Program-made: the position numbers and the translations under genes
Notes under the pieces: model-generated
Database searches by the model: none
What the model was told of the DNA's origin: nothing
What the model saw: only the letters and a program-made list of their open reading frames with translations
From: Ruditapes philippinarum
Taxonomy: Eukaryota
NCBI RefSeq assembly: GCF_026571515.1
Contig: NW_026852372.1
Location: 62,001-126,000 of the forward strand
Direction of reading: 5' to 3'
Length of the DNA stretch: 64,000 nucleotides
Part shown: positions 4,622-50,741 of the stretch, piece by piece
Layout: each line of letters opens with the position of its first letter
Numbering within the stretch: the first letter of the stretch is position 1

Positions 4622-4787
4622 NNNNNNNNNNNNNNNNNNNNNNNNNNNNNNNNNNNNNNNNNNNNNNNNNNNNNNNNNNNNNNNNNNNNNNNNNNNNNNN
4701 NNNNNNNNNNNNNNNNNNNNNNNNNNNNNNNNNNNNNNNNNNNNNNNNNNNNNNNNNNNNNNNNNNNNNNNNNNNNNNNNNNNNNNN
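4622..4787. other. Assembly gap (N run)
   Basis: Run of n. Confidence 1.
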
Positions 4788-11600: not shown

Positions 11601-13357
11601 ATATGACGTCATCGTAGCAGCCACCGGGGGATTAACTCATATTACAGGACCCGAGGTGATATGGTTTTTGTTATTTTGATAACCATTTTTTTTGGAAGCA
11701 TAAATCTAATTATTGGATTAGTTGATGACTTGATCATATTTGGTTAAATTAAAGCCCATTGTTTTACCACATAATAATTATTATAACGCCATCACGTAAT
11801 GTATGGAGCGTTATTCTGGACTCATATTTTGTTTGGTAAATGTTTTACTGGTACCAAATAAATAGCTCTTTGCGACACCCTTTATTCAGATCGATAATGG
11901 AATGAAAACTGAAGATCGTGGACATAAATTTATCCTGTTGTATCGTTTCTTGTTTGTTAGCTACAATAACAAACTTGTGATTTTTCCCCCGGAAAATGTT
12001 CCGAATCCAGTTATTAGTGATTTCCTCCCGGTGAAGTGTTTAATATCCCATGTTTATACATGTATACATTGCTTAGGCCAGTCTTGAAAATATCTTTGTT
12101 TACGCTCTCGCGACCCATGCTAGTTTTGGTAGGGTAGGGATGCAGTAAAATATTTTTATTGTTAGCAGTATATATATTTTTAAAAAAGAAGATATTTGTA
12201 TTGTCAGTGTATATACAAAGATGATTAAAACCTCCAAATTTTGAAAGTTTTATACATTTAACATGTGTATATATACATGTACAATACCAATAAAGCATAC
12301 GAAAAGTAACGAATATAAAATGCGGTTCTCATTGACAAACTCTTTTTCCATGTTAAGAAAATAATTTCTTAATGATTTTTGTGGCAGGTAGCAATAGTTT
12401 TTATTAGGCCTAGCAATATTAACATGGTAAACAGAAAAAAACAAACAAAATACCGGAAAAACAACAACAACAAAAAAAGGAAAAAGTCTAGAACTAGAAA
12501 AAAATAACAATGTAACTTTATGTCTTTATCCGTCAAACTCCGAAAAAGGCCCCATGAAGCACACTGAAGATTTTTGTTTGTGAAATAATAAAAATACCCT
12601 AAGATGTAAACATTGTTTTAGGACTTTTGTATTTTGTTTGTTTGATTGATTTACCCATGCCATCGCAGGGAGCATAATTTGCTTAAATTTTATAAAATCC
12701 ACAGGGTGGCGAACCATGTAAAGTTGGCGTGGCTATGACAGACTTATCGACGGGTTTGTACGCATACGGGTCAATTTTGGCAGCGCTTTTACATCGGTCT
12801 AAAACAGGGCGTGGCCAGCATATTGATTGTAATTTATTGTCAACTCAGGTTTGTTCTATCATTTTTTTCAAGCTATACAACAAATAATGTTATTAAATGT
12901 TCGTCTTATATCAAAATTGAGGACCTCGTGACCAACTGATCAAGGTCGCTAAATTCAAATAAGTTCGAATTTCGATGGCATTTTTTATTATTTCAAGTGA
13001 AAAATTTATAGCGGCAGTTGATTGTTCTACCCTTACTGCCTTTTAGGATAACCTTGAACTCTTCAGAATAAAACTATTCAAATTCAGCATCACGTTTAAT
13101 TTGAGATAAATGTGACCTAAATACAAGTAACTTAGTTCAAAATAAACCACTTAGACACGTTGCACATATGCTATCAAACTAAATGTATCTTTTGAATAAA
13201 CCAGATTTGACAATTTCTACCCACACACCGCCTACCCTAAGCCAATCAAAACGGAAAATTAATACCACATGATAACAAAATGGACGGCACCACGCGGCAT
13301 GCCATCAGCCATTTTTAGCTCGACTTTTCTATGAAAAGGGGAGCTATCCTACTCGCC

Positions 13358-13388
<31 letters not shown>

Positions 13389-16300
13389 TAGCGTCGGCGT
13401 TGGCGTCACACCTTGGTTAAGTTTTTCGTACCACCCCACTTTATTTCAGAAGTATTACAAGTATGGCTTTGAAACTTACCATACTTGTTCACCATCATAA
13501 CCTCCATCTACAGACAAGAGTACATAACTCTGTCAAGGTTTTTGACAGAATTATGGCCCTTTTTTGACTTAGAAAGTGTATTGAGCTTGGTTAAGTTTTT
13601 TGTACCACCTCACTTTATTTCAAAACCATTGGAGGTATTGCTTTGAAACTGACCATACTTGTTTACCATCACGACCTTCATCAACAGACAAGAGGACATA
13701 ACTCTGTCAAGGTTTTTGACAGAATTATGCCCCTTTTTGACTTAGAAAATACATTGAATATGGGTAAAATCCACTTATTGCCTTAACCCTTTGAGATATT
13801 GCTTTGAAACTTTTAATGCTATTTCACATCATTACCCCCATCTGTACGCAAGAGAAGGTAACTCTGTCAAGGATTTGTTTTAAAAATTAAGGCCTTTTAT
13901 CGACTTAGAATCTTGGTTAAGTTTTTAGTACCAGTCCACTTTTTGACTGAACTGTTTGAGATATTAATTTGAAAGTTGGAATACTTGTTTACAATCATGA
14001 TTCCCAAACATGTCCAGGAGAAGGTAATTCTGTCAAAGATTTTATTTGAATTATGGCCCTTAACTGTCAATGTTTTGTATTATAGGCAAGCACTAAAAAA
14101 CTTAAAAAATCTAAAAAAATTCATTCCTATCCACTTGTTCACTTTACCATAAATTATGTCATATAAACATTGCTGTAATATTCAAGGGTATCAAACAACT
14201 AGTTCACTTTAAAAATACAGAGATTCTTGTATTGCCTTTTACTGCAAAAACTTTTTTTATTGGCAAGCAATAAAAAAGTCGAGCGCGCTGTCTTACGGAC
14301 AGCTCTTGTTTGTCGGGTTGCCTATATATAGAACTGAAATACTAACTTGATGCACGAAGTTCGAAACCATTGTGTAGGTTTCTTCGGGGTAAACAATATA
14401 TGGAATGTTTCTCTTAAAATAAGAAACATTAGCTCTATTGTTCATGAAGGAAATATTTTTTTCGAATATCTGCCTGAACGCCGATTCTTAGCATTTTCGA
14501 TATGCTAATACTTTTTATGGTATACCATTCCTCTTAACCTTAAAATCGTTTACCATAACAACTCTAAATAATGTCACTGACTTTAGAACTTCCCATTTCT
14601 ATATCTAGGCGTTCCATTGTAAAAAAGCGGAAACTTTGTAGCCAATAATTAAAAGTGTCGTCAGACTGGAACTGTAGCTGGCCTGGCTTTATACTGGTTG
14701 CATAGGCAATCTATTATCACAAGGCTTTAAGTCATTCTCTGCGACCATAGGACATTGCATTTTGACATAACACTATAGCACGTGGTCGTAAAATAGAGAC
14801 GATTTAGATTTAATGAATGGGAAGATTAGGATAAAATTTGCATTTAAATATTTTTAATTTGTATGCAAGTGTCCAATCCTTTCTACGCTAAATATCTGTA
14901 ACGGTCTCGGTCATCTTTCAATCTATACAAAATCAATAATTATTTTTAAGAAAAATATAATCAAAATAAGTAAGGACAAAATCGTCAATATTACACCTTA
15001 AGATCTTGGCCTGCATTGGTAGAAGACCTGGTTTCAACTGCAGTCGGCATGATTTTAAGTTAAAGAATATTCTTTTATTGTTATTTATTATATACGTGTT
15101 TAAACAGGTAGCATCTCTAGTCAATATTGCCAGCAATTATTTAAATGCGGATATGGAAGCTCATAGACGAGGAACGTCACATCCGAGTATAGTTCCTTAT
15201 CAGGTATCACATCGGTATTTCTCAATTTCTTTTATTTTTATTATTATTTTTTTTGACAAGCGTGCACCTCATCTCTTTACAATAAATATAAATATTCCCA
15301 ATATTTACCCTGATGAGTATAATTGATATATAATTGACTTAATCTAACCTGATTTAAGATCTTTCTAATAATATCAGTATAGGTAGCTAAGCGCGACACA
15401 ATTCTCATATTGTCACATAACTTTGCACAGACACATTTTTATATTGTCAGGTAACTTAGCGCAGATAATTTTCTGATATTGTCACGTAACAAAGCGCGGA
15501 CGCAATTTTAAAATTGCTAAGTATTTAAGCGCACACAAATTGCTCATATTGCCTCGTAGCTTAGCGCAGACACATTTCTTATAATGTAATTCATTGCCAT
15601 ATAAACATGATAGATTCTTTCATAAACTAAAGAAACACTTTGTTTCCAACATAACAATATACTTATATCAGTTGCTAATTTGACTGTGTTCTAATACAGT
15701 GTTTTAGGCATTTGAGACCTTAATTTATTTAATGCCTGGTTATACATGTATTTCTGTTTTAGGCGTTTGAGACAGTAGATGGGTATGTCATGGCGGGAGC
15801 TGGTAATGATAAACAGTTTGAAATTCTTTGTAAGGTAAAAACATGTGCGAAGTTTGAGCCGCGTCACGACAAAACCAACATAGTGGGTTTGCGACCAGCA
15901 TGGATCCAGACCAGCCTGCGCATCCGCGCAGTCTGATCAGGATCCATGCTGTTCGCTGTCAGTTTCTCCACTTGTAATAGAGTTGGTAAGCGAACAGCAT
16001 GGATCCTGATCAGACTGCGCGGATGCGCAGGCTGGTCTGGATCCATGCTGGTCGCAAACCCACTATGTTGGTTTTGTCGTGACGCGGCTCATATGTAATT
16101 CTTTTCAACTCCGTAAATTATTTGATGGAGAACACTAAATGTATAGTTATATATCAATGTCGGACGCCATTTATCATGTAATTTTGATTTATTTTTTTTA
16201 TTTAGAGAAATCGGCAGTTTGTAAATATTCTGAATTTTCTACATAATTATGTGTTTGTTCGGGATTCTTTCAGTAATTAATTGTTTTGAATATTTTATTA

Positions 16301-19300
16301 AAAGTTTAAAGGGAAAAATGATTTTTGTACACAATGAAAAATGATAAACATTTCAATGCAAATGAAAATGTTCAGCTTACTTATTATGATTCATATATGT
16401 TTTATCTTAAAAACTTACGAAAGAAAATAACGATTGTTTAGCGTATAGGTTTACCCGATGTTTGTGACAAACAAGATTATGCAACAAACAGACGGAGAGT
16501 ACATAACAGGAAGTCGCTGATAGACATATTAAGCAAGAGGTAAACAATTTGAAAAAACACAGAACAACCATATAATAAACAAAAACAACAAAACAAAACT
16601 TCGAAAGAAAACAAGAACAACACATGTAGCAGAAACAACAAAAGCAATTATTATTAGCGTCTTAGTAAAAAAAAAAATTTTGTACACAATTCTGTAAGAT
16701 TTATGACTAGTGTAAACTGTATCGCAGAGAACTTTTCTTTTTATAAATGATTTATGTTATAATGTGCAGGTCACTAAGGCTAAAATAGATCCCTGTTAAA
16801 GTTCCTAGATCATGACTGATTCCGTATATTAGATATTTGGTTAAAATCATCGAGGTCAAATGAGCCGCGTCATGACAACACCAACATAATGCATTTACGC
16901 AGGATCCACGCTGTTCGCTATCAGTTTATCTACTTGTAATAGGGTTTGTAAGCGAACAGCATGGACCCTGATCAGACTGCGCAGGCTGGTCTGGATCCAT
17001 GCTGGTCGCAAACACATTATGTTGGTTTTGTCATGGCGTAGCTCAAATGTTCTTCATACATGTAGAACCTTACTTGTATTTATTGACTGGAGCTAAATGT
17101 TAAACTATTTCCACTATCTCTGTAGTTTAGCAATATTTTAGTGGTGTTAGACCGGTAATTGATATCATGATATTATTGTACGTTTTAGATTCAAATTAAA
17201 GACAACTTCTGATTGGTTGTGTGTATTGAGGGATTCTGGGATACCTTACGGACCAATCAACAATATGCAGCAAGTTTTCTCCGATCCTCAGGTTTGTCAA
17301 TTATTTCATTTTGGATATAATCTATTCTCTTATTTTTGATATTTTCTAGAAACTTATTTTATAGTTTCACCAGATTTACAATAAAGAGTCAACTTTGGCC
17401 ATTTTAGGCGTTTTTTTACGGTTTTCCGGTTTCTGTTTCTCTATATTTTATTGTTCTTAACTTGCCAGATATTGCTGAATTTGTGTACAGGACTTGCCCA
17501 GCTTTAAGTTTGCTATTTCAAAGGGGTTTCAATGGCTATTCTTACTCTAGGCAAGTGACTTTCACTGTTTGTTCATAAAAACTGACTCTAGGCAAGTGAC
17601 TTTCACTGGTAGTTTAAAAAACTGACTCCAGGCAAGTGACTTTCACTGTTTGTTCATAAAAACTGACTCTAGGCAAGTGACTTTCACTGTTTGTTCATAA
17701 AAACTGACTCTAGGCAAGTGACTTTCACTCTTTGTTCATAAAAACTGACTCTAGGCAAGTGACTTTCACTGGTAGTTTAAAAAAACTGAACTCTAGGCAA
17801 GTGACTTTCACTGTTTGTTCATAAAAACTGACTCTAGGCAAGTCAGTTTCACTGATAGTTTAAACAACTGACTCTAGGCAAGTGACTTTCACTGTTTGTT
17901 CATAAAAAACTGACTCTAGGCAAGTCACTTTCACTGGTAGTTTAAAAAACTGAATCTAGGCAAGTGACTTTCACTGTTTGTTCATAAAAACTGACTCTAG
18001 GCAAGTGACTTTCACTGTTTGTTCATAAAAACTGACTCTAGGCAAGTTACTTTAAACTGTTTGTTCATAAAAACTGACTCTAGGCAAGTGACTTTCACTG
18101 TTTGTTCATAAAAACTGACTCTAGGCAAGTGACTTTCACTGTTTGTTCATAAAAACTGACTCTAGGCAAGTGACTTTCACTATTTATTCATAAAAACTGA
18201 CTCTAGGCAAGTGACTTTCACTGTTTGTTTATAAAAACTGACTCTAGGCAGTGACTTTCACTGTTTGTTCATAAAAACTGACTCTAGGCAAGTGACTTTC
18301 ACTGTTTGTTCATAAAAAAACTAACTAGAGGCAAGTCAGTTTCACTGGAGTCGATAAAAACAAGCTAGTATTCACAAGTGATCAAAACTGTAAAACTGTA
18401 TCTAAAATGCATTTTTGTTACAGATCGGAATTGTTTGATTAATGCTTAATATTACTTTTCGATACTTCCATAATGGCTGGGTAACTGATCAGTCTGCGAC
18501 AGTAAATCAAAGAAACATGTATTATAATTACTTTGGGATACACATTTGCTTTCTTCTATAGTAGTGTTTTGGGATTTTTTATTGTTTCCGTCGTCCAAAT
18601 CGTCTATTAGCGTCCAAATCGTTCTATTACAGTATTTTGAATGATGCTCCACTGAGAACCTTCCCTCTGAAATGTGGGTCTGTTTTTGACTCAGGCATGG
18701 TTCTTAATGGACTGTGTTCTTTAAACGCAAGTTTTCCTTGTTGACATTTGTCTCCATATTTTTCAGTATTGAAACCTAATATAGAATGTTTGTGAACTAG
18801 TGACCAAATCTAGTACATGTACTAGTAAAATAGAAGAGTGTCTCCCTTTTGTTTAAATACCAGAAGTCTCTAACTACATAAACGTAAATTATGATTTTTT
18901 TAAACAGGTGCTACATAACTGCATGATTCAGAAGATGGATCATCCTACAGCCGGGGATATACGTGTAGCAGGTAATACATATATAATATGTGTATATTTT
19001 GTGAGGATATTAACAGTATCTCGTTTAACAAGTCAATAGTGGTCTTTGTCCTGAAAAAAAAAACAAATATATTAATATTTCAATTCTTATTTTGATATCT
19101 AACCTTTACCTTGCAGATTTTTTTTATATTGACTTGTCCACCATCCATTGTTGGAACTGTCCATTATTAATAATTTGAATATCAAGGTGAAAATTTGATT
19201 GGTCACCTAACAGTATAGAGCCTGATCAGACTACGGTAGAACTGACTGACCTGGTTCTATACTGGTGGCAAAAAATTATCCGTTATGGGTTCATAATATC

Positions 19301-22136
19301 TATTTTTTAACTTGCTGTTCTCGAAAAATAGATTTTGTGATGCGCTTGAGACGTGTTACGGGATCAAATAAGTAAATAAAAAAGTTATTGAAAAACATTA
19401 AAAAGCTTTAAGATAAGGAAGATGTAAATTATTATTATAAACACGTTCGATAACGTAAAACAAGATAGTGGAACGCACAAAAGATTGTGGGTATAGACCG
19501 GAAAATGTTCTATTTTAAAGCTTCTTACCCCTCCGTATCATGACAATTTTAAGATTGTGACGTGTTCAAAATATAGGCATGTAGATTGAAAGTCAGCTTT
19601 GATGTCTGTAGCTCATATCCCAAAGTAAATAGGGGAAATCAGGAAAATATCTGATCAATATTTGCTGTTTAGAAAAGTGAAAAGGGGGATCGCGTCAATG
19701 GGAAAGATAAATAAGATGTATACTAACTACTACATAATTTGTTTGATTGACATATCTAGAGCAGATTTGTGTATTATCAACCATGCATGTACACATGTGT
19801 GGTGGTTGCGAGACACATTGTTATTCAGTCAGTCCAATCAGGATGGCAGTTTTCAAAACTAGCACCATGTTCCCTAGGTTTGTTATTTTTAAACGATAAA
19901 GGATGACTGCCAATGTCAAATGTTATAATTTGACCAAAATGAAAATAAAATAAAAAAATCTTTGGCGGCATTAGTAAAGACAGTTGCTTGGCCAAGCCGG
20001 ATATTTTGTCCGACAATGTTGTCATATTGCAGCCTTCTACACAATGCTTCTGATTGTACACTGTCATGAATAGCCTTCTGCATTTTAAAGGCAAATAATT
20101 AAGTATGCTGAAAAAACAATCATGAACTATTAGTGATATAATCAGTTGATAACTGCCGAACATTTTATGTCGTTTCGACAGGGGCCGACAACTCGCCCAA
20201 CGTTATAAAAAGGAGATCACATACACAAAGCAATATATTTGCATCTAGATAAGCAGATATGTAGATACTCAATATAAAAGCGGGCATAACATTCATAAAA
20301 ATCACAAAAATAAACCTCCCATTTCAATTTAATAGCTGAATTTTAAGAACAAACTAATTATAATACATTGTCTTAAAGTAGTGTTCTGTCTATAGTAAAA
20401 ATTCCTTGACACTGACAAAAATTGCGACGACTATTTCCGGAAAAGATACAGGATGTAATTGTGGACGTCATGAAGTTTGATTGGCATATTAATAATTACA
20501 GCAACAATTTGAATTATGAAAAAGTAATAAGTGGTCGGAGAATGATCACGAACAAAAATCAACTTTATACGAGAAAAACCTTTGAAGCTGTAATTTGACT
20601 AATTTCTTTTTCTTGTACAGGCTGATAATTCATTTATTGGCAACTGTAAGAGATAATTCCAAAGACTGAATTGTTATACAAAATGTTATGTATTGATGGA
20701 ATTTATAAAGTCATGGGACAGTAAATATTAATGTTGGCAATGTTATATAATGTGCAAGTGTTATAAAAGCTTACTGCGGCGTTTTAATATTGACTCAATA
20801 TTATTACTTGAACAATTTTAGAAAAAAATACATAAAGACATGTTACATATGGATTGTCTAAATTTTAGATTTACGGATCTAGATTGATAAATATCCACAT
20901 CATAATATATTAAAGTTTTGGGAACAGAAAAATGATTTTGTTTCAGACGCTTATGATAATGACTTTTTTTCACTCACAAAATATACAACATATCTCATAA
21001 TATAGATATAATTAGCAAAATGTTCAGTTATTGAAATGTGTATCTAAGTGATAATTAACGTGACGTTATTTGTGGAAAACTGTCGAATCACCAATACTAC
21101 ATTAAACCGCATTTGGCCGGTCAGATTTTCCTCTTTTTTATGCCACCACAGCAGAAAAACTAAAATTAAGACAGCCCATGTAATTTTGTGAGATGTCTTT
21201 ATGTAACTTTTCTAAAACTGTTATATAGACTTAAAAAATCTAATTTTGAAAAACTACTTGTCCAATTTCAACCAAACTTGGCAGGATTTATTCTTTGGCA
21301 AAGGGCTTCTAATGTTGTTCAAAGAATTTGATTCCATACAAAAATATGGTTGCCATGGCAACCAAAAGGAATAATAATAAATTTAAAAAAATCTCAAAAA
21401 AAATCTCTTGTAAAGACTCACACGGCCTAGAACATAGATATTTTGCATAAAAGATTGTTTGGTAGACATCTACCAAGATTGTTAAAATTATAGCCTTTGG
21501 GTCACTACAAGGCTTGGAGCTTTGATATTTGGTATATAATATCATCTATAAGTCCTCTACAAAAGCTGTCTAAATTTGCCCCTGTTGTTAAAATTTTCTC
21601 TGCCCCTGCATAGTATAGATGTAAAATTGAACTTTGAAAATTGGAACAAATATATTCGCGTTAATATTCAATGGGTCTTTCCATATATATCCGAAACCAT
21701 TAGAGTACAAATATCCTTTACAACAGAAAACCAGTTTGACTTCCCGCAGCAACTATCACATAATAGCCATAAATACATTTTCGATACGATACATTTGTTT
21801 GTATGTATGATTTTAAACCAGAATCTTATTATTTTCACATTTTGCGCATACATCAATGGTCCAGACGTGCATAAAATGTTATTACATGCAAACAGAAATA
21901 TACAAAGTAAAGTAAAAGAAATGTTCTGTTTTTGACTTTGAATAATATCATATAACAACATTTTATTTTTTATTTATCATTTGATAGGTCCGGCTGTGAA
22001 ATTTGGGGCTACAGATACTGTATTGAATCACGTTCCACCATTACTTGGAGAGCATACACGAGAGGTGTTGATGGAGTTGTTAGAGATGACGGATACTGAT
22101 ATAGACTGTCTTATAAAACAAGGGATAGTGAAATGA
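5649..22136 (+). CDS. SUGCT: Succinate--hydroxymethylglutarate CoA-transferase (CaiB/BaiF family III CoA-transferase), 14 coding exons, 437 aa
   Basis: Exons: 5649-5706, 6232-6337, 7491-7564, 8169-8254, 10319-10369, 10817-10937, 11564-11655, 12705-12848, 15108-15203, 15763-15834, 16442-16539, 17189-17291, 18908-18971, 21988-22136. All are GT-AG with matching phases, 1314 nt in total. The translation carries family motifs [97 protein letters not shown] (catalytic Asp region), [17 protein letters not shown] and PPLLGEHT. The basic N-terminus lacks acidic residues and resembles a mitochondrial transit peptide. Confidence 0.95.
6353..6523. mobile_element. Palindromic MITE family A, copy 1 (right arm internally deleted)
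   Basis: GAGCCGTGTCATGACAAAACCAACATAA...TTATGTTGGTTTTGTCATGACACGGCTC; homologous to the copies at 15856, 16862 and 29354. Confidence 0.88.
6736..6995 (+). mobile_element. Degenerate tRNA-derived SINE
   Basis: A-box-like TGGCTGGGTGGTTAAGG and B-box-like GGTTCAAGACC, followed by a SINE-like body ending ...aagctgggaagtgaccatatgacc. A shorter related head lies at ~12922-12970. Confidence 0.65.
10039..10136. repeat. 32-bp tandem triplication at the end of a decayed Helentron-type element (~9500-10140)
   Basis: TCTGCAGAATTATGGCCCTTTTACTAGCGTGC x3; the core gaattatggccctt also occurs in the internal repeats of 13312-14310. Confidence 0.8.
11082..11295. repeat. Degenerate ~16-bp tandem repeat (TAGATGATTGAATCCG)
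   Basis: Multiple imperfect units in SUGCT intron 6. Confidence 0.7.
13200..14430 (+). repeat. Older interspersed repeat split by the Helentron-type insertion
   Basis: 13200-13311 joined to 14310-14430 aligns by eye with the uninterrupted copy at ~31288-31490. Confidence 0.7.
13312..14310 (+). mobile_element. Helentron-associated non-autonomous element (HINE/DINE-like architecture) with internal satellite-like repeats
   Basis: Starts TTTTTAGCTCGACT, followed by a (GGCGTC)n microsatellite at ~13360-13408 and 3-4 diverged ~175-bp internal repeats. Ends with the subterminal inverted AGTCGAGC, a short hairpin GCTGTC-ttacg-GACAGC and a T-rich tail. Confidence 0.82.
15375..15585. repeat. Degenerate ~35-bp tandem repeat
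   Basis: Recurrent (taac/tagc)ttagcgcagacacattt..tatattgtca units in SUGCT intron 9. Confidence 0.65.
15856..16090. mobile_element. Palindromic MITE family A, copy 2 (full length, 235 bp)
   Basis: Perfect ~102-bp inverted arms (15856-15957 and 15989-16090) around a ~31-nt spacer; GAG...CTC termini. Confidence 0.92.
16862..17044. mobile_element. Palindromic MITE family A, copy 3 (deletions in both arms)
   Basis: Same termini, flanked on both sides by AAAT (candidate 4-bp TSD). Confidence 0.88.
17544..18360. repeat. 41-bp minisatellite (~20 units) in SUGCT intron 12
   Basis: Consensus ACTCTAGGCAAGTGACTTTCACTGTTTGTTCATAAAAACTG, with an interspersed variant ...CACTGGTAGTTTAAAAAACTG. Confidence 0.96.
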
Positions 22137-22576: not shown

Positions 22577-23421
22577 ATTAAAACAATTTGAGTTGACTTT
22601 TGAACCTACTGGCTGATTGTTAATTATGTTCATTGTGAATTTTAGAACTGAAAGAGTTTATACATGTAGCTGGCATAATTAGATAATAAAAATGTCTGAA
22701 TACTGAGTCGTTAAAAAATCTCCAAACCATTCTTGCAGAAAAATCTGCTAATTCTTTCCAACTTACTTGACCTTCTGAAAGAGGATACGATACGATATTC
22801 AATAACTTATAAAACAAGACTTACGAAGAATTTTTTTTATAAATATGCTTTCTTTTTTTATTGAAAGTAATTTAAAGATAGTGTCCAATATTACTATGGC
22901 GTTATAATAAACACTTGATCCCCTCCAAGTGATGGATGGGACTTTACTAAATGCGAGATGGAGGAAGACCTCGGGGGACCCCTCCTTGCGACTTTGTGTA
23001 CGATATTATATGAGCAGCAGTTCAGGAAAAGAAACGGAACTAACTGAAAACTATATACGGTGGTGATATCAAGTTTCCTGCATTTTTCTTGTAAACGATA
23101 AACAAGAAATAAGTTTGAAATAAAAAAGTACCATGACAGTCCTCGGAAGATCTGACAATCATTTATAAAAATAAAGAAAATATGTTTAACTATCGGACAG
23201 AGCATACGTCACAGAAAATGGTATATGATTTGTTATTATAAAGGGAAAAAAACAACGATTTATTCTGCCACAACACTTTATTTTCATAAAAAAGAAGCAA
23301 AAACAACAAAGAAAAATACATTGTAATCAAAATAAATTAACATATTACATGTACAAATGATGACAGTATTGATAAAAGTAGGTCATGTGAGTATATTACC
23401 GTCTATTTTTTACTTAAAGAG

Positions 23422-23752
23422 GCACATTTGTCGATCAAAGTTAAGGCATAATTGTCGATCAAAGTTAAAACACAATTGTCGATCAAAGTTAAGGCATAAT
23501 TGGCGATCAAAGTTAAAACACAATTGTCGATCAAAGTTAAGGCATAATTGGCGATCAGAGTTAAAGCACAATTGTCGATCAAATTTAAGGCATAATTGTC
23601 GATCAAAGTTATGGCATAATTGGCGATCAAAGTTAAAGCACAATTGTAAATCAAAGTTATCAAAGGTAAAGCACAATTGGTGATCAAAGTAAAGCACTAT
23701 TGTCGATCAATGTTAAAGCACAATTGTCGTTTAAAGTTAAGGCATAATTGCA
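23422..23752. repeat. 24-bp minisatellite with alternating variants (48-bp dimer)
   Basis: AATTGTCGATCAAAGTTAAGGCAT alternates with AATTG(T/G)CGATCAAAGTTAAA(A/G)CAC; ~13 units. Confidence 0.93.
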
Positions 23753-25212
23753 ATTGATGCAAAGACAACTTTTTGTGACTGAAAAAAGCACATAAACACT
23801 GAAAAAAAAAAAAGTTTTAACAACTGAAAATTCGTCATGAGTTTTCTATACAACGTTTTAGAAGTTAAAATAGCAGACAATGAAAAGTGTACGTTGCACC
23901 GGCTTCTTCAGCGCTTATATAATGACTGCGATGAATGTTACTACAAGACAACAAAAACATAACAACAATGGCATGAATTTAACATGCGGACAGACCTCTG
24001 TAAATGATTTAGTCGTCTTAAATAATTTCAAAGAAAATATGATTCATTTCGAAAAGGCGTGTAATTTGACATCCAAAAACTTTTTATACATGTAAATAGT
24101 CATCCACGATATACTTAATTGACAATTAATGGACCTAGACATAGCATGTTTAGATAATGAAAGATCGACGACGAGCAAAATGTTTGTGACAAATATTGTT
24201 ACGCCATGAGCAGCGCTTGTTTATGAAAGAACAATAACTTTAAAATTTGAAGCAATAATGTACTAGTCGCGGAAAAGAAAAAAAAAAGTGTACATGTTAC
24301 AGAGTATCTTTTTATTATCTTTGTGCTGTATATTAACTAAATAAAAATGTTTCTATGAGACTAAACAAAGATAATTATCATGTACTTGCTCATTTTACTA
24401 AAGTTTGTTACTTTCATTACAGATACAAATGACTGCTCAAAAACAAATTACTTCCAAAATGAAATAGTGTTTTTGTAGGCAATATATATACAACGTATGA
24501 CATGATATAATACAAGAATACAAACAGATGACCACATATATATCATGCAACGACTTTTTAAAAATGTACAGAACACTAATAAGACAAGTTCCTTGGAATA
24601 ATCAAAACTTTAAATGAGGTAGTGAATGAACAATGGGCATCTTATATAAGCTTGCGCTCAAATATTTGACAATGCTTTACAACAGAGCTGACATTTTACG
24701 TCGCCAGCAGGCGCGCCCGACACTTTCGATGTCATTTCTCTCATCTGATAATAACAATCTTTTGAATAATTGTATATCTTAAATTAACCACAAGTGTTTA
24801 AAATTTGCAACAAGTGTCTCTATAAGATCGAAAGCAGATCTCAACCAACTTGATTCTGTTGATGAGTGACTGAGGGCTTTGATTAAAGAAAACATACAAC
24901 AACGAGAGAACGAGCGACAAAAGTTGTTTGGGAAAGTGTAACGTGCACATGTTGACGCATACTTTAGCTCCACCAATCAAAAGAGATCTTAGTAATACAT
25001 TCAAAAATGCAGTATAATTATAAAACAGTTTTCCTTGCCGCCTCGCTGACAAGATCATTTCCACTGACACTTTAATAATAATTTCACCGGCTTTCATGTA
25101 GATACTATGAATAATTTAATCAGTTTTAAGCACTAGTATAGTGTTAATACGTTTTGCAATGTAAAATAAATCATTTTCATTTTCCTTTATTTCTCTTCCT
25201 TCGATTCGCACT

Positions 25213-28200
25213 TCACGATACTGAAAAATGAAACAAAGTTGTTACATATTATTTTGTAATAAATGATGTTGGAACATAACGATTAACAACACAATGGCCT
25301 GTAAGTCTGACAGGAAGTTGTAAACTGATAATGGCTCTGATGAAGTATTAATGTTTTCAATTCTTCAAGCTTACAATGGACTTGTCCGAATTCGAAGAAT
25401 TCAAAGTTTTGTTTAAACAACTAGTCGGACTACTACACTAAAGTTGTACAATTATTATACATTCTCAATTCGACATTCACTCTAGACTTTCCGCTTTGTA
25501 TCCCCATAATCGCAGCCGTATAAGACCAGATAAGCAAGAGAGCTGGGTAAATGATGATATAACATTTATTAACTCTTGGGCTGGATTGATTCCCCTAATT
25601 TTATTGTGGTAGAACTTGGTCAGATGGATGTGTTTTTTTACTCATATTCAGCAGTTAAGGCACCAAATCTATTTACTGGTACATTTTAATTTAGTTTCGG
25701 TCAATACTTACTGTCAAGCCGTGTTGTTGTGGTCGAGCTTATTTCTAGTACAGGGGAGAAATTCGGGTCATCAGGCTCACTGTTATCTTCATTGTAGACA
25801 GCCTCCTCTTGAGTGCACTCGTACTCTAAAACAGTATATTTTATACCTCCTAATTTCTTCAAAATTTTTACATATTACATCTATTACATCTATAAATATA
25901 TTGTTATTACTTTGAAGTTTTTTCTACAACAACAATATCCAACTGATTAAAATAAGTCTCGGAATAGCTAACAACATAGTTTTTAAATTAAATGTGCACA
26001 AATAACCAAACGCTAGTAAGTTTATGCAGCTATGCAAACAATGTTTCCTTACCAGTTACAGTTGTACACACTGTAGGGTCTATGACTGTTTTAGCATCAA
26101 GAATATTTTCTTCCATGTCCCTTACATGTACTTCAAATCCGCCATTTCTCCTTCCCCTGGTCACAATTCGTTTTACGGCTTCAGTCACGTGCAGAGATAC
26201 CCAGCGCGCGCTATCCCAGGTGACCATCTTAGCATCAATTAAACGCATGTTGCTGTGGCGCACTAGAATATAAAAGATGTACAAAAGTATTATAAAATTG
26301 TTCCAGTCAGTAATCGTACTTTTTTTTATATCATTGTAAATAACCAACTCTCAATCCATCATTAGAAAGAAAGTTTGTGACGTTTGTACCTCATACTGAT
26401 CTAGGATCATTATGTTGTTATAAATATTGTTCTCAACTAGCTCTTTTTTGCATATTAAGTACAAGCAAATCTTCCATTACAGCTTGGAGACCACCATTTT
26501 ATACGCTTTTTGTGCTGGTATCTCTGACATGCCAGCTTACTATACAGTGTTTTTCTGTACAATGTACTACACCTGACATTTTTTTACAAAATAATATTTA
26601 CTTACACCTGACATGCTATAGTACAAGTGAAACAAAACTCACATCTGACATGCGATATTTAAGGTTTTCTGAACTAGTGAAACAAAACGCACATCTGACA
26701 TGCGACAATTAAGGTTTTCTGAACAAGTTGAACATAATCTTCACCTGACATGTAATATTTTACATTTAAATATTAGTTACATCTGACATGTGATATTTCC
26801 TGTTTTCTGTTTAAGTTAAAGACATGCGATATGATAGGTGTTCTAGTAAATCTGCACTTACCCTGATATCTAGCATTGATCTTAAAAAACTACTTGACTT
26901 ATATCTGGAATGGAATTTTAATGTTTTTTTCTTTCAGTACTGATAAAGATAAACTTACATCTAGCGTGAGATCGGATAGGTTTTCTGTACTGGTAAATCT
27001 TTATATGCAGTCTAGATGTACTGTGATCACTGTCGTATGCACAGGGGCAATCTGTAAATTAAAAAAAAGATATTTATGATCATCTCTTAGTTTAAACACA
27101 ATCGTAAAACAGCGGTCTTCCCCGTATATTGTGTCGCATAATAACGGAGGAGATCAAACTGAGTTGAAACAGCGGTATGATTTTTTTACTGCGGAACCTC
27201 CACTATAAATTTACTTCCGGAGAACCAACAAACACATACAAACAAAAACATAGCAAAAACAATCGTTCGAGGAGTGTTCAAATATGAATGCATTCAGGCA
27301 CGTAAAATTCTAAATTGTTTTATTTTGTTTCCTCTAAGTATTCACCCCACACAAAGGTTCAGCATCCGGATCAAACCTTTGAAGGAATTTTCATAATCTT
27401 ATTTTTTTCTAGGTATAATAGGAAGACATTGGAATATTGCAGAACCAGTGTGTGTTCGATAAACAAATATTCGACCTGAAACGTATTTTCGTAGCTTTGA
27501 CACTGACAAAACTTATTTCGAAAGTGTTTGGGACCCTGAGTTGTAAGAGAAAATACATTGCCTTATTTATACTGATGGTCCTTTTTGCAACGCATGGTCT
27601 TTTGCCAGACTTCGTTGCCCGAATCTTCTTTTGGTGTTTCAGTTTTGGCTCATAAAAATGAACCTATGTTTCGTCATCACTTACCAGTGACGACATTTGC
27701 AAAATATCGTGCATTGTTATTTAGATACTGTTTAAGCAACATTTTTTTCTGCTTATCTGTAAGCAAATAGGGTATCCATCTAGCACAGATCTTTCTCATT
27801 TTCAAATCAAGTTGCTCTTTATGAGATGTACGCGATACTTGCTATTTTCCTAGTGATGTATCTTGCCTTGGTATGAACTATTTCTTTCATTTTAGCAACC
27901 ATCTTGACAGACGTTTCGGTTTAGACCGACGGGCATTGGGTGCATTTTCAGTGGAATTAACGCACATTTGAATTTATTAAACCAAAGAGACATTTCATTT
28001 CGTCCATATACAGCATAGATGTCATCACAATTGTATTTACAACCATTGTTAAGGAGACAACGATTTCTGATATAAGACCGTATTCAGCGGCATACTCTGA
28101 TCTTCTACCAACCAGTTTGTGTATTACAGTATACGAAAAATAAGTAAACGGATTTTAATGAATGTGTTATCAATTTAAAGCTAACATGTATATCATCCCG

Positions 28201-31200
28201 ATATTCTTAACTTCCTTGTGTTTTTCACAATATTGAACAATATAACGTTCTAGATGCATTCATATTTGAACACTCCTCGTTCATATATATACCTTGAACA
28301 TATAACATTTTTAAAGATTCTTTAACTTACCTTCTCTTCGTTTTAAATGGAGTCTGACAACAGCTGATGTTATATCTAGATTTGGATCAGGATTACTGGG
28401 TATTGCAAAAAAGTATCGAATGTTTCTTGAACTGGTGTCAAACCAAATCGATCGATTCATGTAATCTGGTAGATCGATCATTGGTAAATCACCTGAAAGT
28501 AGTTTAATTACCTCTAAATTCTGAAACTCAATTTGCGTGGTGTTGTAGGGTTAGTTAAACTGATCGTCGGGTTAGTTAAACTGATCGTCAAAAAGTTAAA
28601 ATTTGATGTTATGGTATTTGTCTTCAAAATAATCGCTATGATATTGTACATGTCTATCCTTTAAATGTCATGCTAATTAACAACTTGATAGATATCAGAC
28701 AACAGTCTAGACGTTATTTGTCCAAGTTTTAATTTCCTGTTATTTATTGGAAACATAGGCATCCAAAAGTTCAACTGTACTAATAAATTACAAACGAAAG
28801 ACCGAACGCACGCACGAACGTACGAACAAACACATACAAACACGCAAATATGATTTTTATTCTCATCACATGTATATCTTAAAGTTCAATTAAGATATTT
28901 ACATGACTGGCATATCAACAGATCAACTGCTATGAGCTGAATATGATCATCGCCTGCCATCGGTTCCAAATGATAAAAACTAAATGACCCCAAAATAGCC
29001 ATATGAAAGTATCATTTACTCACATGCCGGAAAGTAGCAGTGCTTCTGCCTGGTTACGTAAACAGGCGTTTGCATACCAAGAAGCAAGCGTCTCTTCGTT
29101 TCAGGGTCTATATCCGGTGGGCTTGTCCATCCTAGCGAGTCTAGCACGTGCTGTCGGAGGAAATACATGCGCGCAGCCCTTGACCTGAAATAACAAAAAA
29201 AATCTAATCGTTTATTCTTGAACTGTAGCACTTTTAGTACTTTGATGGTTTTTGATAAAGTTTTGTTTACCTCGATGTTGTTCGATTCCACAATTTAAGA
29301 AGTCTTAGGCTCCGAAAATAGTCCATATGCGGATGATTTAACGTAGTACAAATGAGCCGCGCCATGACAAAACCAACATAATGGGTTTGCGACCAGCATG
29401 GATCCAGACCAGTCTGCGCATCCGCGCAGTTTCATCAGGGTCCATGCTGTTCGCTTACAAACCCTATAACAAGTAGAGAAACTGATAGCGAACAGCATGG
29501 ATCATGATCAGACTGCGCGGATGCGCAGGCTGGTCTGGATCCATGCTGGTCGCAAACCCATTTTGTTGGTTTTGTCATGGCGCGGTTCAAATGCTGTTCC
29601 ATTTATGATAAATGCAAACAGTTGTTTTTTCTAGTATACATTATATCATTACAAGAGGGTCATAATGGTCTTAGATTTCTCATAAACTGAAGACTGGATC
29701 TTATATGATAACGGGTATTCCATTATCATGGATGCTTGTACTCAATGACGGGACCGGATTTGACCATAGGACTCACTCTGGTACTTTCTCACTCAGAAGC
29801 GCATAAATAGATTTATAGTTATTTATTTTTAGATCTACCCGAAATTATATATAACTTATCTTCTGATTCAATTATCAATAAACAGTATTTATGTATTCAG
29901 CAGAAATGTATATGTTTGTTTACAATCATATATCTGATGTTCACATATACATTACCTCGTGGTCGAACTCTGAGTAGTGGTACATGTCTGTACCTTATTA
30001 CTTTAATCGCTCTTTTCCCTCTGTTTATTCTTCAAAGTTCTTACACGGATTTATATTACATAATATGTATTTATATATTTGTAATATAAATCCGTGGTTC
30101 TAAATAGCAAATAACTGTGGCCAAAACGAAACTAAAATGTTGCCACAGACTAAAATGCTACTTCAACTAGATCAAAACAAACAACAAACATACATGTAGA
30201 ATAAAACATACTATACTATTGCTCAAAGTTCTGAAATTTAGATTCAATCAATCCAACTTATGAATAAAATTACGCCTTGTTGTTTGATCATGCAAAAGAG
30301 AGTTTTTGTGAATTCGGTCATTTAGTACAAATGTTACACGTGTACTTGAACTATTCGTGACTATGATAACTATAACCATGTGACGAAATTATTCTTATCA
30401 TCAGACATCTCACCAGGAGCTATTACCGCAACCGCAACCCATTTCCGCCCCCACAGTGCTCTACTTAGAAAAAATTCTATGATTTTTTTCTAACATTTTT
30501 GTTCTGTAAAAAATAAGTATCACACTTTGATATGTAAATTTCATTCTTTACGGTTAATTAAAGTCTTTTAATCGCCTCAATTGATTTAATTATTTATTTT
30601 CATATTTGTTATTAAACTGTCTTTACAGTAAAAAGTAAACATTCTGCCACTTTTTATGTAGACCTTTTTTCTTTCTAATTAGGGTAATCTACACACTCAA
30701 TAAAACTCTAGTGCCAATAGATTTTGAAAAGAGGTGATATGGCGACATAATGTAAAATAATATAACGATCAAAATATTTGTGGACTTATTTAGTAAAATA
30801 CAAAAAAAATGTTTTTATTCTTCAAAACAATCCTTTTTTTCAGTTGAAAATATCAAGCTTTCTTTCAAGCTAAATTGAAATTAGCGCAGTAGCATTAGGC
30901 GCCACTGACCTTACACATACCACACCCACTTCATGCCAGAATACAAGCAGAAAACATTGATACTTTATCGTACTATTCTAATCAAGTTAATTTTGGTCAT
31001 GCTTCATATTTAAATGTGTGGATAATTTCACAAATTATCTGTATTTCAGACAATATCTATAATTAAGGCAATATGCACGTGAATCTTTAGACTAGGCATA
31101 TACAAGTTTAAACGTAAAAAAAAAGGATAAAAGATATCAGAAGTTTGTTTACATTACCTTTTAAGCAGTAAAACCTGACGATTTTATTAAGTACTTAACG

Positions 31201-34200
31201 TTGTTGTTCTTATCTGATTTCATTCAATTTGTCATTTCATTTCAACTTAACGTAAATGTAGTAAATAATGAACCAGATTAGCGAACAAGATTTGACCATC
31301 TCTACCCGTACACCGTCTGCCCTAAGCCAATAAACGGAGAATTTATTACCAAGTGGAAAAAAGGCGTCTACGGGGCAAGTCATCTGCCATGTTTATGTCG
31401 GGTTACCTATATATAAAATTGTAATACTGTCTTCATTTACGAAGCTCGAAACCAGTATGGAGGTTAACAATATTCGGAATATTTCTCTTAAGCAAGTCTA
31501 TTTCACACACATACACACAAAATATGTTTCGAATGGCGATTCCTGGCATGTTTTGCTGGAAACATTTCGAATACATTCATGCTCCGTTTCTTTTTATTCT
31601 GAGTATATGTATAAATCAGTTTGACCCTCACCTGATGAAGCAAAATAACAGCAACGGCAAGTCATGCCCTGATATTCGTAACAGAGCCTACTGTGTGCTT
31701 TTAACACTGTTGTTATGATTACGGACTTCTCTTTGATCTTAATTGACTCAATCGACCTTGATGGGGTTACTTCAACACTGAGTACAAGCGCCAATATTGT
31801 ATAAAGATTATCAGATACTCGGATTATCTCCGCCGTAGTAAACAACTTTGGATATAAGACCGTATCAAATAACGAAGAACGCATATTGACTGGCATTGGC
31901 ATACCTGTTTAGACTAACTTACTGCCAGATAATATCAAATCAGCCAGGGGCAAGAAATTTAAGGTTAATCCGCGAAAAAGTAAGAATTGTGTGAAAAGAT
32001 GTAATCCGATAAACTGAAAACAGACGCTCGTTTTTTTCCCGCTGAAATAAGTCAGTTTCTGTAGGAGAACAATAACTAATTATCATCGAAAAACGGGGTT
32101 ATAGGTTGGATCACTTGTAAATATAGAAATATCGCAATGCTCCGAATAGAATAAATCAAGGTTTGTTTTCGTATTCTCATTTTCATTTAGCAAGGGAAAT
32201 GTTTTCTAACAATAACAACATCAGCAACAGTAGCCGGTTTCGTATCCGCCGCCACTTCCACCACAACCAACAACAAAAAAACAACAACAAGCAAAAAGGT
32301 GAGGGAAAATAACGTTTTATATGAAAAAATTATAACACGATATCAAATTTTATTGGCTCTCCTATATTAATTTGTTATTCATTATCTAATGCTGTGTGGA
32401 CCTTGCACAAGTGTAACGTATTTCTAACAGGCAGCTCGTAGCATAACCTTATATCCCCACTGGTTAATTAAACTGTATTTATAATGACCATCCCATATAA
32501 TCTGTTGATCTGAAAGACACAAAGCCTCAAATGACCTGCTTAAGGTCAATCGGCTATGACCTCAGAACTGAGGTCATAAGGAGTTAAGGGGCAGATGAAC
32601 ATTACATCTTTCGGAATTCAATTAATCATTTACCCGTACATTGGCGCCCACTTCTGTATGACCTGAAGAGCGGAAGGTCAATTTTACAATATCTAAACTT
32701 GAATAGTGGATTACCACATAGTTTAAATATCAAATATGTGACCTCACCCTGTTAGGGTCATATTATAAAAAGCCAAAATGTTTGTGGTTTTTCCTGAATG
32801 TCCACTAACAACTAAGGTCTGAGTCATCTTTATCTGCGGTTTTACCTTAAGTCAGATACTGATGTAGGTTATTTTGCAATGTTATGACAATGGATCATTC
32901 AATGCTTTATTCTGTGAGAGGTTTATCTTGAATTCAATGTTATTGTAACACAGTTTATCATTTCTGTATTATTTAAATTAAAAACAGTGAAATACGACAA
33001 CCGTAATACATGTATTTAGTTGAACTGTTTTTGTTATGTAAAGAAACCTAACCATCCCCGCACTCCCACACTAGACGCGCTATTAGTACTTTACAATGCG
33101 TCTTTAATATTAAATTGAACCAAGAAGAACTAGATACGGTATTGATTATCTCGATGTCGGAACCTCATGGGTGAAACATCAGAAGTAAAGTGATTTTTTG
33201 ATATGATCTAATTTAAATTTTTTCATCTTTTAAACATTATTTTTACCCTGAATCGCGCAACGTCACGCGGTTTTTATTATGACTTCATCAAGTTACGTTG
33301 CAACGTTTTGCTACGTTTTCTTCATGAGGTATGAAATGTTCAAGGTCTATAGATTTTTAAACTAACCATATATAATTTCACTTAATGTAAACTGTATGTG
33401 TGTATTGCCAATGTGAAATGTAATACTTGAAAGATCATAACCATAAATGCCCACGTTATGCAGTAACACCTTCATTTTAAAGAGTTTCTTTTTCTTAATA
33501 AAACATAGACAAAGACCATTTTGGTTTCAAATGGTTATTCATATAGAATTGAAATGGAAGATAAATAAGAAATCCAGTTGCCGTTTAAATCCCTTAAACG
33601 TTGAAAAGTTTGTTCCTGTTTAAATTACATAAATTCGACAGGCAATAACCGTAGTGACGTATGTTGGTGTGAAACACTTATCAATATAATATTTCTTTTT
33701 CTGGCCAAAACGTCATCTTTCGCATGATGTACTTTAAAATACTCTTCAGAGGCAACGACCGCTGCGAAAAAGAAAAATATCGGTTGTTTTTCTCAATTTT
33801 CTTTAACCTTAAGTCTGGGGTCATAGACGCATACCTGCACGGGCGCATTGTTGGTGCATATTTTACTTCAAGTTCGTCCGTGCATTGACCTTAGAAGGGT
33901 TGAAGGTTGTTGACCACAATCAACAGAAAAATAAATGAATGTAATAGTAACAGAAATTCGCATAAAAAGTAATAGTTTTAAAATTCAAATTGCGCCTTCC
34001 TTATTTTAAAACAAGTTAGTTGAGTTACTACAACATGCCTTTCCTCATTTGCACACTGTACAAAAAGGAATAAAACAAGTGTAGTAATTATTTTGGTAAA
34101 TTATATGTCAGATCAAGACACAAAGAACATCTACCCGTACATCATAATGTATTATCATTTTCCTTCTGCGTCGATTTAGAAAAATACAACTTTCTTTCTT

Positions 34201-35508
34201 TCTTTAGAAAATATCAAATATCTGATTAAGATATTTAAAAAAAAAGACATGTAATACAAATAATTTTAATAGCAATATTTTGTAATAAATCATAATTTAG
34301 TATCAGAAATGAAAATGTGTGTATATATATATATTACTGATAATACAAAATTTTCAGTCTCGCTGTATTTAATGTATGCTGTATATTTGTGTAATGACGA
34401 GGAACTGTTATGTTCAAGTCATATTGTATTATAAAATCTATTCTATTATGAAGAAAATATAAATGGGACCTTCATTAATAGAAGAAAATTTAATTAAACA
34501 AATTAAACATTAAAATAAAAAAAAAAAATCATACATTTGCAATAACATTTTGTTTAAATTGTATGAAATTAAGCGTTTTTTCATAGTTAAAAAAAATTCA
34601 CTGTAAAATCAAAATAAATAAATAAATAAATAAATAAATAAAAATAAATAAAAGTGATAAATGGAGTGTAAATAATGAAAATATTATAATATTTATAAAA
34701 AGATATATTGAATTGATTAGTGCAGTGATATTATTTCATGTTAAAGTTTCCCTTTTTATGAAAAAATTGCAACAATCGCAGTGAGATAAAACCTTTTAAA
34801 AGGAATATGAATTTTTAAGTTTCGTTTTACTCAAGATTTTCAATAAATTCTTTCGACCTGTCGAAAAGGACGTATTTTCTTGTAGTTTGATTTATTAGAT
34901 TAAATGTATTGATTTGATTTTTTTCTATAATTATACATTAATTTCTTTATAATATCCTTAAAATGTAAATATGATTATTCTAAACATTTGCTCATCGTCA
35001 ACATATAAAAAACTAACTTTTGCAAATGATTTTATTATTATAATCTACGTTTTGAATGTACTGTTCTACATTTGAAACAAATATTACTGTTAAACATAAC
35101 CATGTATTAATTAGTATAAATTATGTCTTATAGGCCCACTGGGTCGGGTACCAATATTTTGAATGTAAATATTATGTTTGTAATTATATGATGTACATGA
35201 CACTATAACTATGTTGTTTAAGAAAAGAAGAAGATGAAGAAGAAGAAGAAAAATGAATCCAAAATAAATCATAATTATGTTATAGATAATTACCTTTGAA
35301 GTCTTTCATCACGATTAGTGTCAACCTCGTCTGAATCTGAATTATCTTCCACGGACTCCGTCGGACTGTGCACTAAAGTTGTTTCTGTCGATGTAGAATT
35401 AGCGGTTGTCTGGACTGGCCTTGTCGCAGACGACAACGTTTGATTGTCTTGACAAAAAATAAACTCACAGAATAAAGCAAAAACTATGATATAGTCATAA
35501 AACTGCAT
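25213..35508 (-). CDS. Secreted TGF-beta-propeptide-like protein with no mature cystine-knot domain, 7 coding exons, 320 aa
   Basis: Exons (minus): 35508-35294, 29184-29024, 28492-28331, 27051-26959, 26262-26053, 25825-25712, 25220-25213. All are GT-AG, intron phases 2,1,1,1,1,1, 963 nt in total. Signal peptide MQFYDYIIVFALFCEFIFC, then a Ser/Thr/acidic linker. Prodomain-type motifs follow in order: RMYFLRQHVLDSLGWTSPP (alpha1/latency lasso-like), RYFFAI, ITSAVVRLHL, IKIYQY, RLIDAKMV, WVSLHVTEAVK, NGGFEVHV, PVLEIS. The protein ends TTTTRLDIS*. The last exon is the least certain. Confidence 0.82.
26505..26830. repeat. Degenerate ~40-50-bp tandem repeat with a CA(C/T)CTGACATG core
   Basis: The core recurs at ~26521, 26571, 26606, 26641, 26691, 26742 and 26779. 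Confidence 0.6.
27268..28279 (-). mobile_element. Decayed, internally deleted mariner-type (Tc1/mariner) DNA transposon in intron 3 of the TGF-beta-prodomain-like gene
   Basis: Perfect 26-bp TIRs CGAGGAGTGTTCAAATATGAATGCAT at 27268-27293 and 28254-28279. The minus strand encodes LKMRKICARWIPYLLTDKQK (WVPHEL-type linker) near 27745-27805 and FANVVTG (first catalytic Asp region) near 27680-27705, broken by stops and frameshifts. Confidence 0.9.
29354..29588. mobile_element. Palindromic MITE family A, copy 4 (full length)
   Basis: Long inverted arms, AAAT on both flanks. GAG...CTC termini with a 4-bp TSD are compatible with a Sola-type parent (inference). Confidence 0.9.
31288..31490 (+). repeat. 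Uninterrupted copy of the repeat that is split at 13311
   Basis: Shared blocks gatttgac..tctaccc..acaccg..ccctaagccaat..gccat|tgtcgggtt.cctatatata..cgaag.tcgaaacca. Confidence 0.7.
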
Positions 35509-50610: not shown

Positions 50611-50741
50611 NNNNNNNNNNNNNNNNNNNNNNNNNNNNNNNNNNNNNNNNNNNNNNNNNNNNNNNNNNNNNNNNNNNNNNNNNNNNNNNNNNNNNNNNNN
50701 NNNNNNNNNNNNNNNNNNNNNNNNNNNNNNNNNNNNNNNNN
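50611..50741. other. Assembly gap (N run)
   Basis: Run of n. Confidence 1.

Follow-up and report, generated by a model that had tools for sequence, protein, structure and literature searches.

In a stretch of 64,000 nucleotides from the clam Ruditapes philippinarum (C859:62001-126000, in an assembly of 1.41 Gb), that we will call the window and whose numbering is used throughout unless a contig is named, we have found a gene of the TGF-beta family that has been reduced to its prodomain and conserved in that state. The gene lies on the minus strand, from 35508 to 25213, and its seven exons encode a prodomain with neither the furin site nor the growth-factor domain (the ligand) that normally follow. 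It is annotated and yet, as far as the literature that we could find goes, undescribed. That a gene without a ligand really exists here is, we consider, very probable. As for what it does, the best explanation overall, to which we give a probability of about 0.5, is that of a maintained prodomain-only gene acting on the growth factors of other genes.

Structure of the gene and identity of its product

The original prediction described seven phase-consistent exons giving an open reading frame (ORF) of 320 aa, and this model is confirmed. With the exon borders set by script, AG...GT flanks were found at every exon and the incoming phases of exons 1 to 7 were 0, 2, 1, 1, 1, 1 and 1. The whole-codon translations of exons 1 to 6 are identical, residue for residue, to P0030, the R. 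philippinarum "uncharacterized protein LOC132758427" of RefSeq (320 aa), and both models end in ...RLDIS. RefSeq therefore has a model of this gene already, though without a name for it. It is a single-copy gene, P0030 matching only contig C859 in a search of the genome. Profile and sequence searches were run exon by exon, and for the analyses that required a whole protein P0030 was used.

Exon 1 (35294-35508, residues 1-71 of P0030) runs from the ATG at 35508 to a GT donor at 35293-35292, and codes for a signal-peptide-like hydrophobic N-terminus (residues 1-20) and then for a low-complexity linker of Ser, Thr and acidic residues with the sequons NQT and NST. The alpha1 helix, a lasso-like WTSPPDIDP stretch, the alpha2 helix and a CYFPAC loop are all encoded in exon 2 (29024-29184, residues 73-125). 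Exon 3 (28331-28492, residues 127-179) is the beginning of the arm domain (IWFDTSS..., ITSAVVRLHLKRRE) and falls within the region, residues 138-260, that matches the prodomain family PF00688, while exon 4 (26959-27051, residues 181-210) carries a CPC motif and the strand RLHIKIYQY. The core of the arm is found in exon 5 (26053-26262, residues 212-280), also part of the PF00688 match, which contains LIDAKMV, WVSLHVTEAVK, RGRRNGGFEVHV and the first Cys of a C-x7-C loop. The second Cys of this loop, an acidic stretch and the final prodomain strand PVLEISSTTTTRLD are located in exon 6 (25712-25825, residues 282-318), that ends in phase 1 at a GTAAGT donor. The coding part of exon 7 (25213-25220) only completes the split codon (Ile) and adds a Ser before the TGA. 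All the prodomain-type motifs that had been picked out originally were recovered in their places.

The acceptor CAG of exon 7 ends at 25221 and is preceded by a long pyrimidine tract, and an AATAAA is located at 25191-25186; this exon is proposed because database proteins from other species agree with it. Retention of the last intron would bring the frame to a stop four codons past exon 6 (SKY, stop), so that the product would have no ligand whether or not this intron is spliced. Intron 1 contains an inverted repeat at 29353-29589, with arms of 103 nt that are 93% complementary and a spacer of 31 nt, probably a foldback repeat or one resembling a miniature inverted-repeat transposable element (MITE).

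The product had been predicted to be a TGF-beta-type prodomain and to match PF00688 (TGFb_propeptide), and this is what we found. Exon 5 alone gave 27.2 bits (E 3.7e-6) and P0030 gave 39.7 bits (E 5.8e-10, over the residues mentioned above), both past the curated cut-off of 25.8 bits. An AlphaFold2 model of P0030, built on a family alignment of 14 sequences (A1), had a mean predicted local distance difference test (pLDDT) of 72.6, with a helix at residues 3-18, a disordered linker with values below 50 over residues 18-62, helices at 61-89 and 99-108 and a beta-rich domain after them; a strand is predicted at residues 306-316, which are encoded by exon 6. When the model was compared with the PDB by Foldseek, the top 39 matches were all pro-TGF-beta1/2, pro-myostatin, pro-activin A, BMP9/10 prodomains or free latency-associated peptide (LAP), and so included the two pro-proteins to which the original prediction had pointed. 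The arm domain aligned with these structures by VIA-align with Z of 10.1-11.9 and root-mean-square deviations of 2.4-4.3 Å over 113-150 residues (5hly, 6sf2, 7poi, 5vqp, 8fxs, 6p7j and 5ntu). The structures ranked next were unrelated jelly-roll folds, with Z of 9 and below. Among the sequences of the PDB, the nearest to the family profile were the TGF-beta2 proprotein (E 8.6e-7), TGF-beta3 and GDF8, and the profile aligned the alpha1 segment of exon 2 with the alpha1 helix of TGF-beta2/3, with only 2-3 bits for that segment.

Residues L86, L89, G90, W91, P95, I97 and C121 are invariant in 14 out of 14 family members, including those that have a ligand. There are three conserved Cys pairs (C121/C126, C181/C183 and C276/C284) and four N-glycosylation sequons in P0030. 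Its N-terminus is hydrophobic at residues 3-18, helical in the model and followed by CQD, and the orthologues are arranged alike. P0030 would be a secreted glycoprotein that consists solely of a TGF-beta-superfamily prodomain, with secretion, glycosylation and Cys pairing as they can be read from the sequence.

The succession of a putative signal peptide, a predicted alpha1, lasso and alpha2 and then a beta-sandwich arm is like the one found in pro-TGF-beta1/2/3, pro-myostatin/GDF8 and pro-activin A. However, in all of these the arm is followed by a furin site and a growth-factor domain, and in the clam protein it is not. Unlike the latent-type proproteins, it stops five residues past the last prodomain strand. 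There are also differences in detail with TGF-beta1, since the loop that contains the CxC of the clam protein is not the one of the bowtie CxC, and there is no RGD.

Search for a ligand domain around the gene

We found no match to PF00019, the growth-factor domain, in P0030. The genome-wide scan with this profile gave 15 exon-level matches, all on other contigs and none on C859, which is the outcome that had been anticipated for a six-frame scan. For the more sensitive searches of C859:1-126000 every stop-to-stop frame of at least 20 aa on both strands was used with the filters off, and the search for a ligand reached in this way about 87 kb downstream of the gene, to the end of the contig. 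An unfiltered hmmsearch for a cystine knot with a hidden Markov model (HMM) of eight paralogous ligands from the clam genome gave nothing above 10 bits over this region, and phmmer with the ligand tails of P0011, P0014 and P0015, three ligand-bearing relatives from other molluscs (see next section), gave no match in it. Nothing in the whole clam genome matched the ligand parts of P0011 and P0014. The original prediction had reported no sequence typical of a cystine knot in the 3 kb that precede the SUGCT-like gene downstream, and the absence of a ligand domain extends well beyond that distance, across the whole of C859:1-126000.

Between the prodomain and the C-terminus of P0030 there is no furin-type RX[KR]R; the sole RX[KR]R of the protein is RGRR at residues 246-249, inside the arm. 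In the ligand-bearing relatives the furin sites come immediately after the P.LE strand. An in-frame RRKR was detected at 25192-25203 of the minus strand, three codons past the stop, at the location where the furin sites of the relatives align. It could be what is left of the lost furin site, or it could have arisen by chance. The background of RX[KR]R is 0.00055 per codon in the six frames of the window, so about 0.004 are expected in the stretch of 11 codons after the stop. A non-coding remnant would not be expected to have survived since so old a loss, and in the longer tails of the other orthologues we found no RRKR-like motif. Chance, the A/G-rich composition or a history specific to the venerids are possible explanations.

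Two kinds of candidates for a missing ligand were considered and rejected. One was a minus-strand ORF at 24798-25097 that is faintly knot-like (CVNMC and a C-terminal CC), which gave no match to the HMM of the paralogues or to the divergent ligand tails. The other was a ligand located on a different contig, for which C2753, C12388 and C15257, with PF00019 matches only, could be proposed. These matches are found in the middle of large contigs and are unlike the ligand of P0011 and P0014; in two of the three cases the ligand match is part of a long open frame that continues upstream of it. The ordinary TGF-beta complement of the clam includes at least 10 loci with PF00019 exons (C9752, C15579, C2753, C11855, C3669, C6353, C7521, C12388, C11150 and C15257), among them a BMP2/4-like gene on C9752 and a myostatin-like gene with a CCRYPL motif on C6353.

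The downstream neighbour of the prodomain gene is a coenzyme A (CoA)-transferase family III (SUGCT-like) gene on the plus strand (7483-22000), with PF02515 exon matches at 7483-7566, 10805-10939, 11560-11652 and 12699-12851. The two genes are convergent and about 3 kb of intergenic DNA is left between them. A tandem array of 24/48 bp at 23420-23750 accounts for the long repetitive ORFs found on both strands of this gap. Further copies of the SUGCT family, or haplotigs, were detected on the small contigs C13683, C9335, C13706 and C5653. Within the span of the SUGCT-like gene there is a 41-bp tandem array at 17544-18347 (about 20 copies, 90% match), different from the 41-bp satellite at 57622-61149 (about 85 copies, 85% match), to which a short array at 56946-57126 is related. 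This satellite explains why, at 58-62 kb, the GC content is raised and both GC and AT skew are strong. The window contains three runs of N, at 2954-3088, 4622-4787 and 50611-50741.

Orthologues, selection and loss of the ligand

A HMMER search of exon 5 against 1.84 billion representative proteins gave 18 matches, and its identity to exon-sized fragments of other bivalves was 74-88%. Molluscan orthologues ending at the same point were to be expected if the prediction was right, and we found them in several bivalves. Complete proteins without ligand are those of Mercenaria mercenaria (XP_045169627.2, 319 aa), that ends in RLDIS just like the clam protein, Mactra antiquata (324 aa) and Sinanodonta woodiana (337 aa), and there are partial models from Mya arenaria and Dreissena polymorpha. 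The ...RLDIS end appears in the Mercenaria protein P0001 and also in P0031, a protein from a transcript-like contig. In the databases the family is either called "uncharacterized" or carries misleading names: the Mactra protein (P0032, "Bone morphogenetic protein 2") is full-length and has no growth-factor domain, a similar name has been given to the Mya protein (P0037, "BMP2-like protein"), which is only a fragment of 160 aa, and BMP2 is not a near relative of the family.

Four Logan contigs of 1.5-2.8 kb contain complete and uninterrupted ORFs of 308-337 aa that end in a stop codon. These contigs look like spliced RNA, because the gene calls of the same collection on genomic fragments (P0002 and P0004) run into introns. 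They are indirect evidence that the gene is expressed in four species, and they show a mature mRNA that comes to its end without encoding a ligand. All the ligand-less proteins share the junction ...[DE]|[ILVG][STL], beyond which they either end immediately or have 8-25 further residues, mostly acidic, and past this junction we found neither a furin motif nor a knot in any of these orthologues. At least seven other species stop at this same junction, and chromosome-scale assemblies (contigs of 37-90 Mb) are included among them.

To the intact ORFs, present in at least eight species, can be added the evidence of nucleotide replacement. A metagenome contig from another bivalve, L018, contains exons 4 and 5 with the same borders. 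In exon 4, 29 of the 30 residues are identical and nearly all the synonymous sites differ. Over the 99 codons of both exons the non-synonymous rate (dN) was 0.105 and synonymous sites were saturated (proportion of synonymous differences, pS, 0.79), and for exon 5 alone we obtained a dN of 0.126 and a synonymous rate (dS) of 2.2, that is a dN/dS of 0.057. The dN/dS on exons 4-5 was below ~0.06, very far from the value near 1 that would have spoken for decay. The prediction that this is not a pseudogene is borne out by these values together with the intact orthologues, four of them on transcript-like contigs.

The gene had also been thought to be possibly undescribed. No description of it, or of ligand-less prodomain genes in general, was found in the literature that could be consulted, subscription journals being outside this coverage, and to that extent the suggestion stands; on the other hand RefSeq already lists the gene as an uncharacterized protein. 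A mention of PF00688 in the literature on mussel shell proteomes was considered and turned out to be ordinary myostatin.

The nearest relatives that bear a ligand have 411-427 aa and come from Solemya velum (P0011, KAL5007438.1, PF00019 with 31.9 bits), Gigantopelta aegis (P0014, XP_041366981.1, 23.8 bits) and two Patella species (P0015, KAK6165827.1, 16.5 bits, and P0019, XP_050419086.1). The clam protein has in common with them LRQxxLxxLGWxxPPxI, the C-x4-C loop, IYQY..RP.R, the C-x7-C loop and the P.LE strand. In the relatives, however, the chain continues: a furin site (RRRKR, VRRR or RHRHRR) comes first and then a cystine knot that is compact and divergent, both missing from the clam protein. 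The best matches of P0011 and P0014 in the clam genome were exons 5 and 2 of the prodomain gene. We also considered that the gene might be a recent duplicate of another clam TGF-beta gene, and rejected it; the best paralogue match to exon 5 within the genome had only 15 bits and the gene is single-copy.

The maximum likelihood tree of the prodomain parts mirrors the species tree (gastropods, Solemya, Sinanodonta, clams). A branch with a support of 99/96 separates the eight ligand-less rows from the rest, with Solemya as their sister. This pattern is consistent with a single old loss of the exon coding for the furin site and the ligand. The gene derives from a divergent molluscan TGF-beta-like proprotein whose furin site and compact cystine knot are still present in gastropods and in the protobranch Solemya; the furin/growth-factor exon has been lost, and a short terminal exon now closes the protein just past the last prodomain strand. 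The simplest reading is that the loss took place after the protobranchs branched off and before the split of Unionida and Imparidentia, a timing that hangs on the Sinanodonta gene model. Within Imparidentia the evidence for the loss of the ligand is firm. No pteriomorph member turned up in the exon 5 search or in a profile search with alignment A1 (8000 candidates scored, which added only fragments), a result that does not imply absence from oysters, mussels and scallops.

Possible action of a prodomain without ligand

If the gene encodes the prodomain alone, any growth factor that serves as its partner must come from another gene. The mechanism we propose is that the conserved straitjacket formed by alpha1, lasso and alpha2 would clamp a dimeric growth factor belonging to a different member of the family, with myostatin- or activin-like factors as the most plausible candidates. 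The binding would take place either inside the secretory pathway or extracellularly, and the ligand would be held latent, chaperoned or localised as a consequence. In the solved pro-complexes, the wrapping of the growth factor is the only role that we know of for the alpha1 helix, the lasso and the alpha2 helix, and in this family the segment has remained under constraint since the ligand disappeared. There are also precedents for an action in trans, since free myostatin propeptide and TGF-beta LAP keep their ligands latent in this way, binding the mature growth factor without a covalent link as would be the case here. The difference is that those are cleavage products of a precursor that had its own ligand, whereas the clam gene encodes only the prodomain.

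We have examined this possibility by predicting the complex of residues 61-320 of P0030 with the mature myostatin-like ligand of C6353. The interface score ipSAE was 0.72, compared with 0.20 for the best control; the mark used was reached by 51 of 78 solved complexes and by 2 of 108 mismatched pairs. The runs agreed in at least 51% of the contacts and the pLDDT of the partner was at least 68. In the predicted interface, residues 74-109 of P0030 lie against the fingers of the ligand. Over residues 70-111 of the ligand-less proteins, the predicted contact positions were conserved at 0.79 and their neighbours at 0.64. The prediction supports a competence to bind a ligand of the family. The suggestion of the original prediction, a dedicated antagonist or chaperone, gains some support from the conservation of the contact residues and from the complex prediction that passed, and is still to be read as an interpretation. 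Granted that the gene is real and has no ligand, we would put trans-binding, as modelled, at nearly even odds.

There are several points that weigh against an action on the ligands of other genes, or against the data on which it is built. The success of the complex prediction may reflect the memory that the model has of solved pro-myostatin and pro-TGF-beta complexes, or just the likeness within the family, and it does not identify which ligand is bound. The conserved face of the amphipathic alpha1 helix could pack on the arm domain of the protein itself or on a partner that is not a ligand. Secretion is deduced from sequence features, the junction of exons 6 and 7 and the absence of a ligand-bearing isoform are taken from database proteins, and the Sinanodonta model is an automatic annotation. 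Finally, the N runs at 2954-3088 and 4622-4787 are unread, although they are located beyond the whole SUGCT-like gene and as written are too short for a ligand domain.

The strongest alternative, although in our opinion a less likely one, is that of a real and conserved orphan prodomain that acts with no TGF-beta-family ligand, as a binder of the matrix or the cell surface or as a signal of its own. It would then have adopted one of the secondary roles that prodomains play, for instance in matrix targeting or in the binding of receptors or integrins. Such side functions exist, since BMP prodomains bind fibrillin and LAP binds integrins. The arm is the most conserved part of the protein (majority fraction of 0.75-0.80, against 0.67 for residues 61-100), and features specific to the clade have appeared after the loss of the ligand, namely the CPC motif, the RGRR within the arm and the acidic C-terminal tails of several species, all of which would fit such a role. 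What speaks for the binding of ligands instead is that the residues which grip the growth factor in the solved pro-complexes are invariant and that the predicted complex uses exactly that segment, while neither RGD nor any other known adhesion motif can be seen.

Much more improbable is that the lack of a ligand is an artefact of annotation or assembly, with the ligand exon hidden in an unread gap, past the end of the contig, on another contig or in a rarer isoform. A strong donor ends exon 6, the terminal exon adds no more than two residues, the contig ends 87 kb downstream and two runs of N were not read, all of which would be compatible with it. However, the stop at the same junction in the other species mentioned above, chromosome-scale assemblies and four intron-less contigs with a stop codon included, is difficult to reconcile with an artefact, and so is the failure to match the ligand parts of P0011 and P0014 anywhere in 1.4 Gb or to find a ligand-like ORF on either strand of C859:1-126000. 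The least credible explanation, to which we give hardly any weight, is a decaying remnant, i.e., a unitary pseudogene of a TGF-beta gene minus its ligand exon. It would account for the loss of the part that is normally regarded as functional and for the RRKR just past the stop. Against it are ORFs without interruption in at least eight species, whose tree agrees with that of the species, the low dN/dS over saturated synonymous sites, the high identity of exon 5 across bivalve fragments and the existence of transcript-like contigs.

Taking the prodomain-only gene that acts on other growth factors as the preferred explanation, a broader statement can be put forward tentatively, and with less confidence than the explanation itself: that heteroconch bivalves carry a genetically separate protein dedicated to latency, which would have been regulating myostatin- or activin-like ligands in trans ever since a loss that preceded the divergence of Unionida and Imparidentia.

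The prodomains of the TGF-beta family are usually regarded as accessories of the growth factor located on the same chain. Here the accessory has been kept and the growth factor lost, and purifying selection on what is left has been strong in several families of bivalves, belonging apparently to two orders. This selection on a prodomain without ligand shows that a prodomain can be maintained for a function of its own. If it does bind the ligands of other genes, the clam protein would be the natural equivalent of the propeptides that have been engineered to inhibit myostatin and TGF-beta, and would offer a tractable system for the evolution of the specificity between prodomain and ligand, as well as a plausible locus for growth and muscle traits in aquaculture species. 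Were this true, follistatin, noggin and the DAN family would be joined by a new class of endogenous extracellular antagonist or chaperone of the TGF-beta family, and its gene would be a candidate for growth traits in farmed clams.

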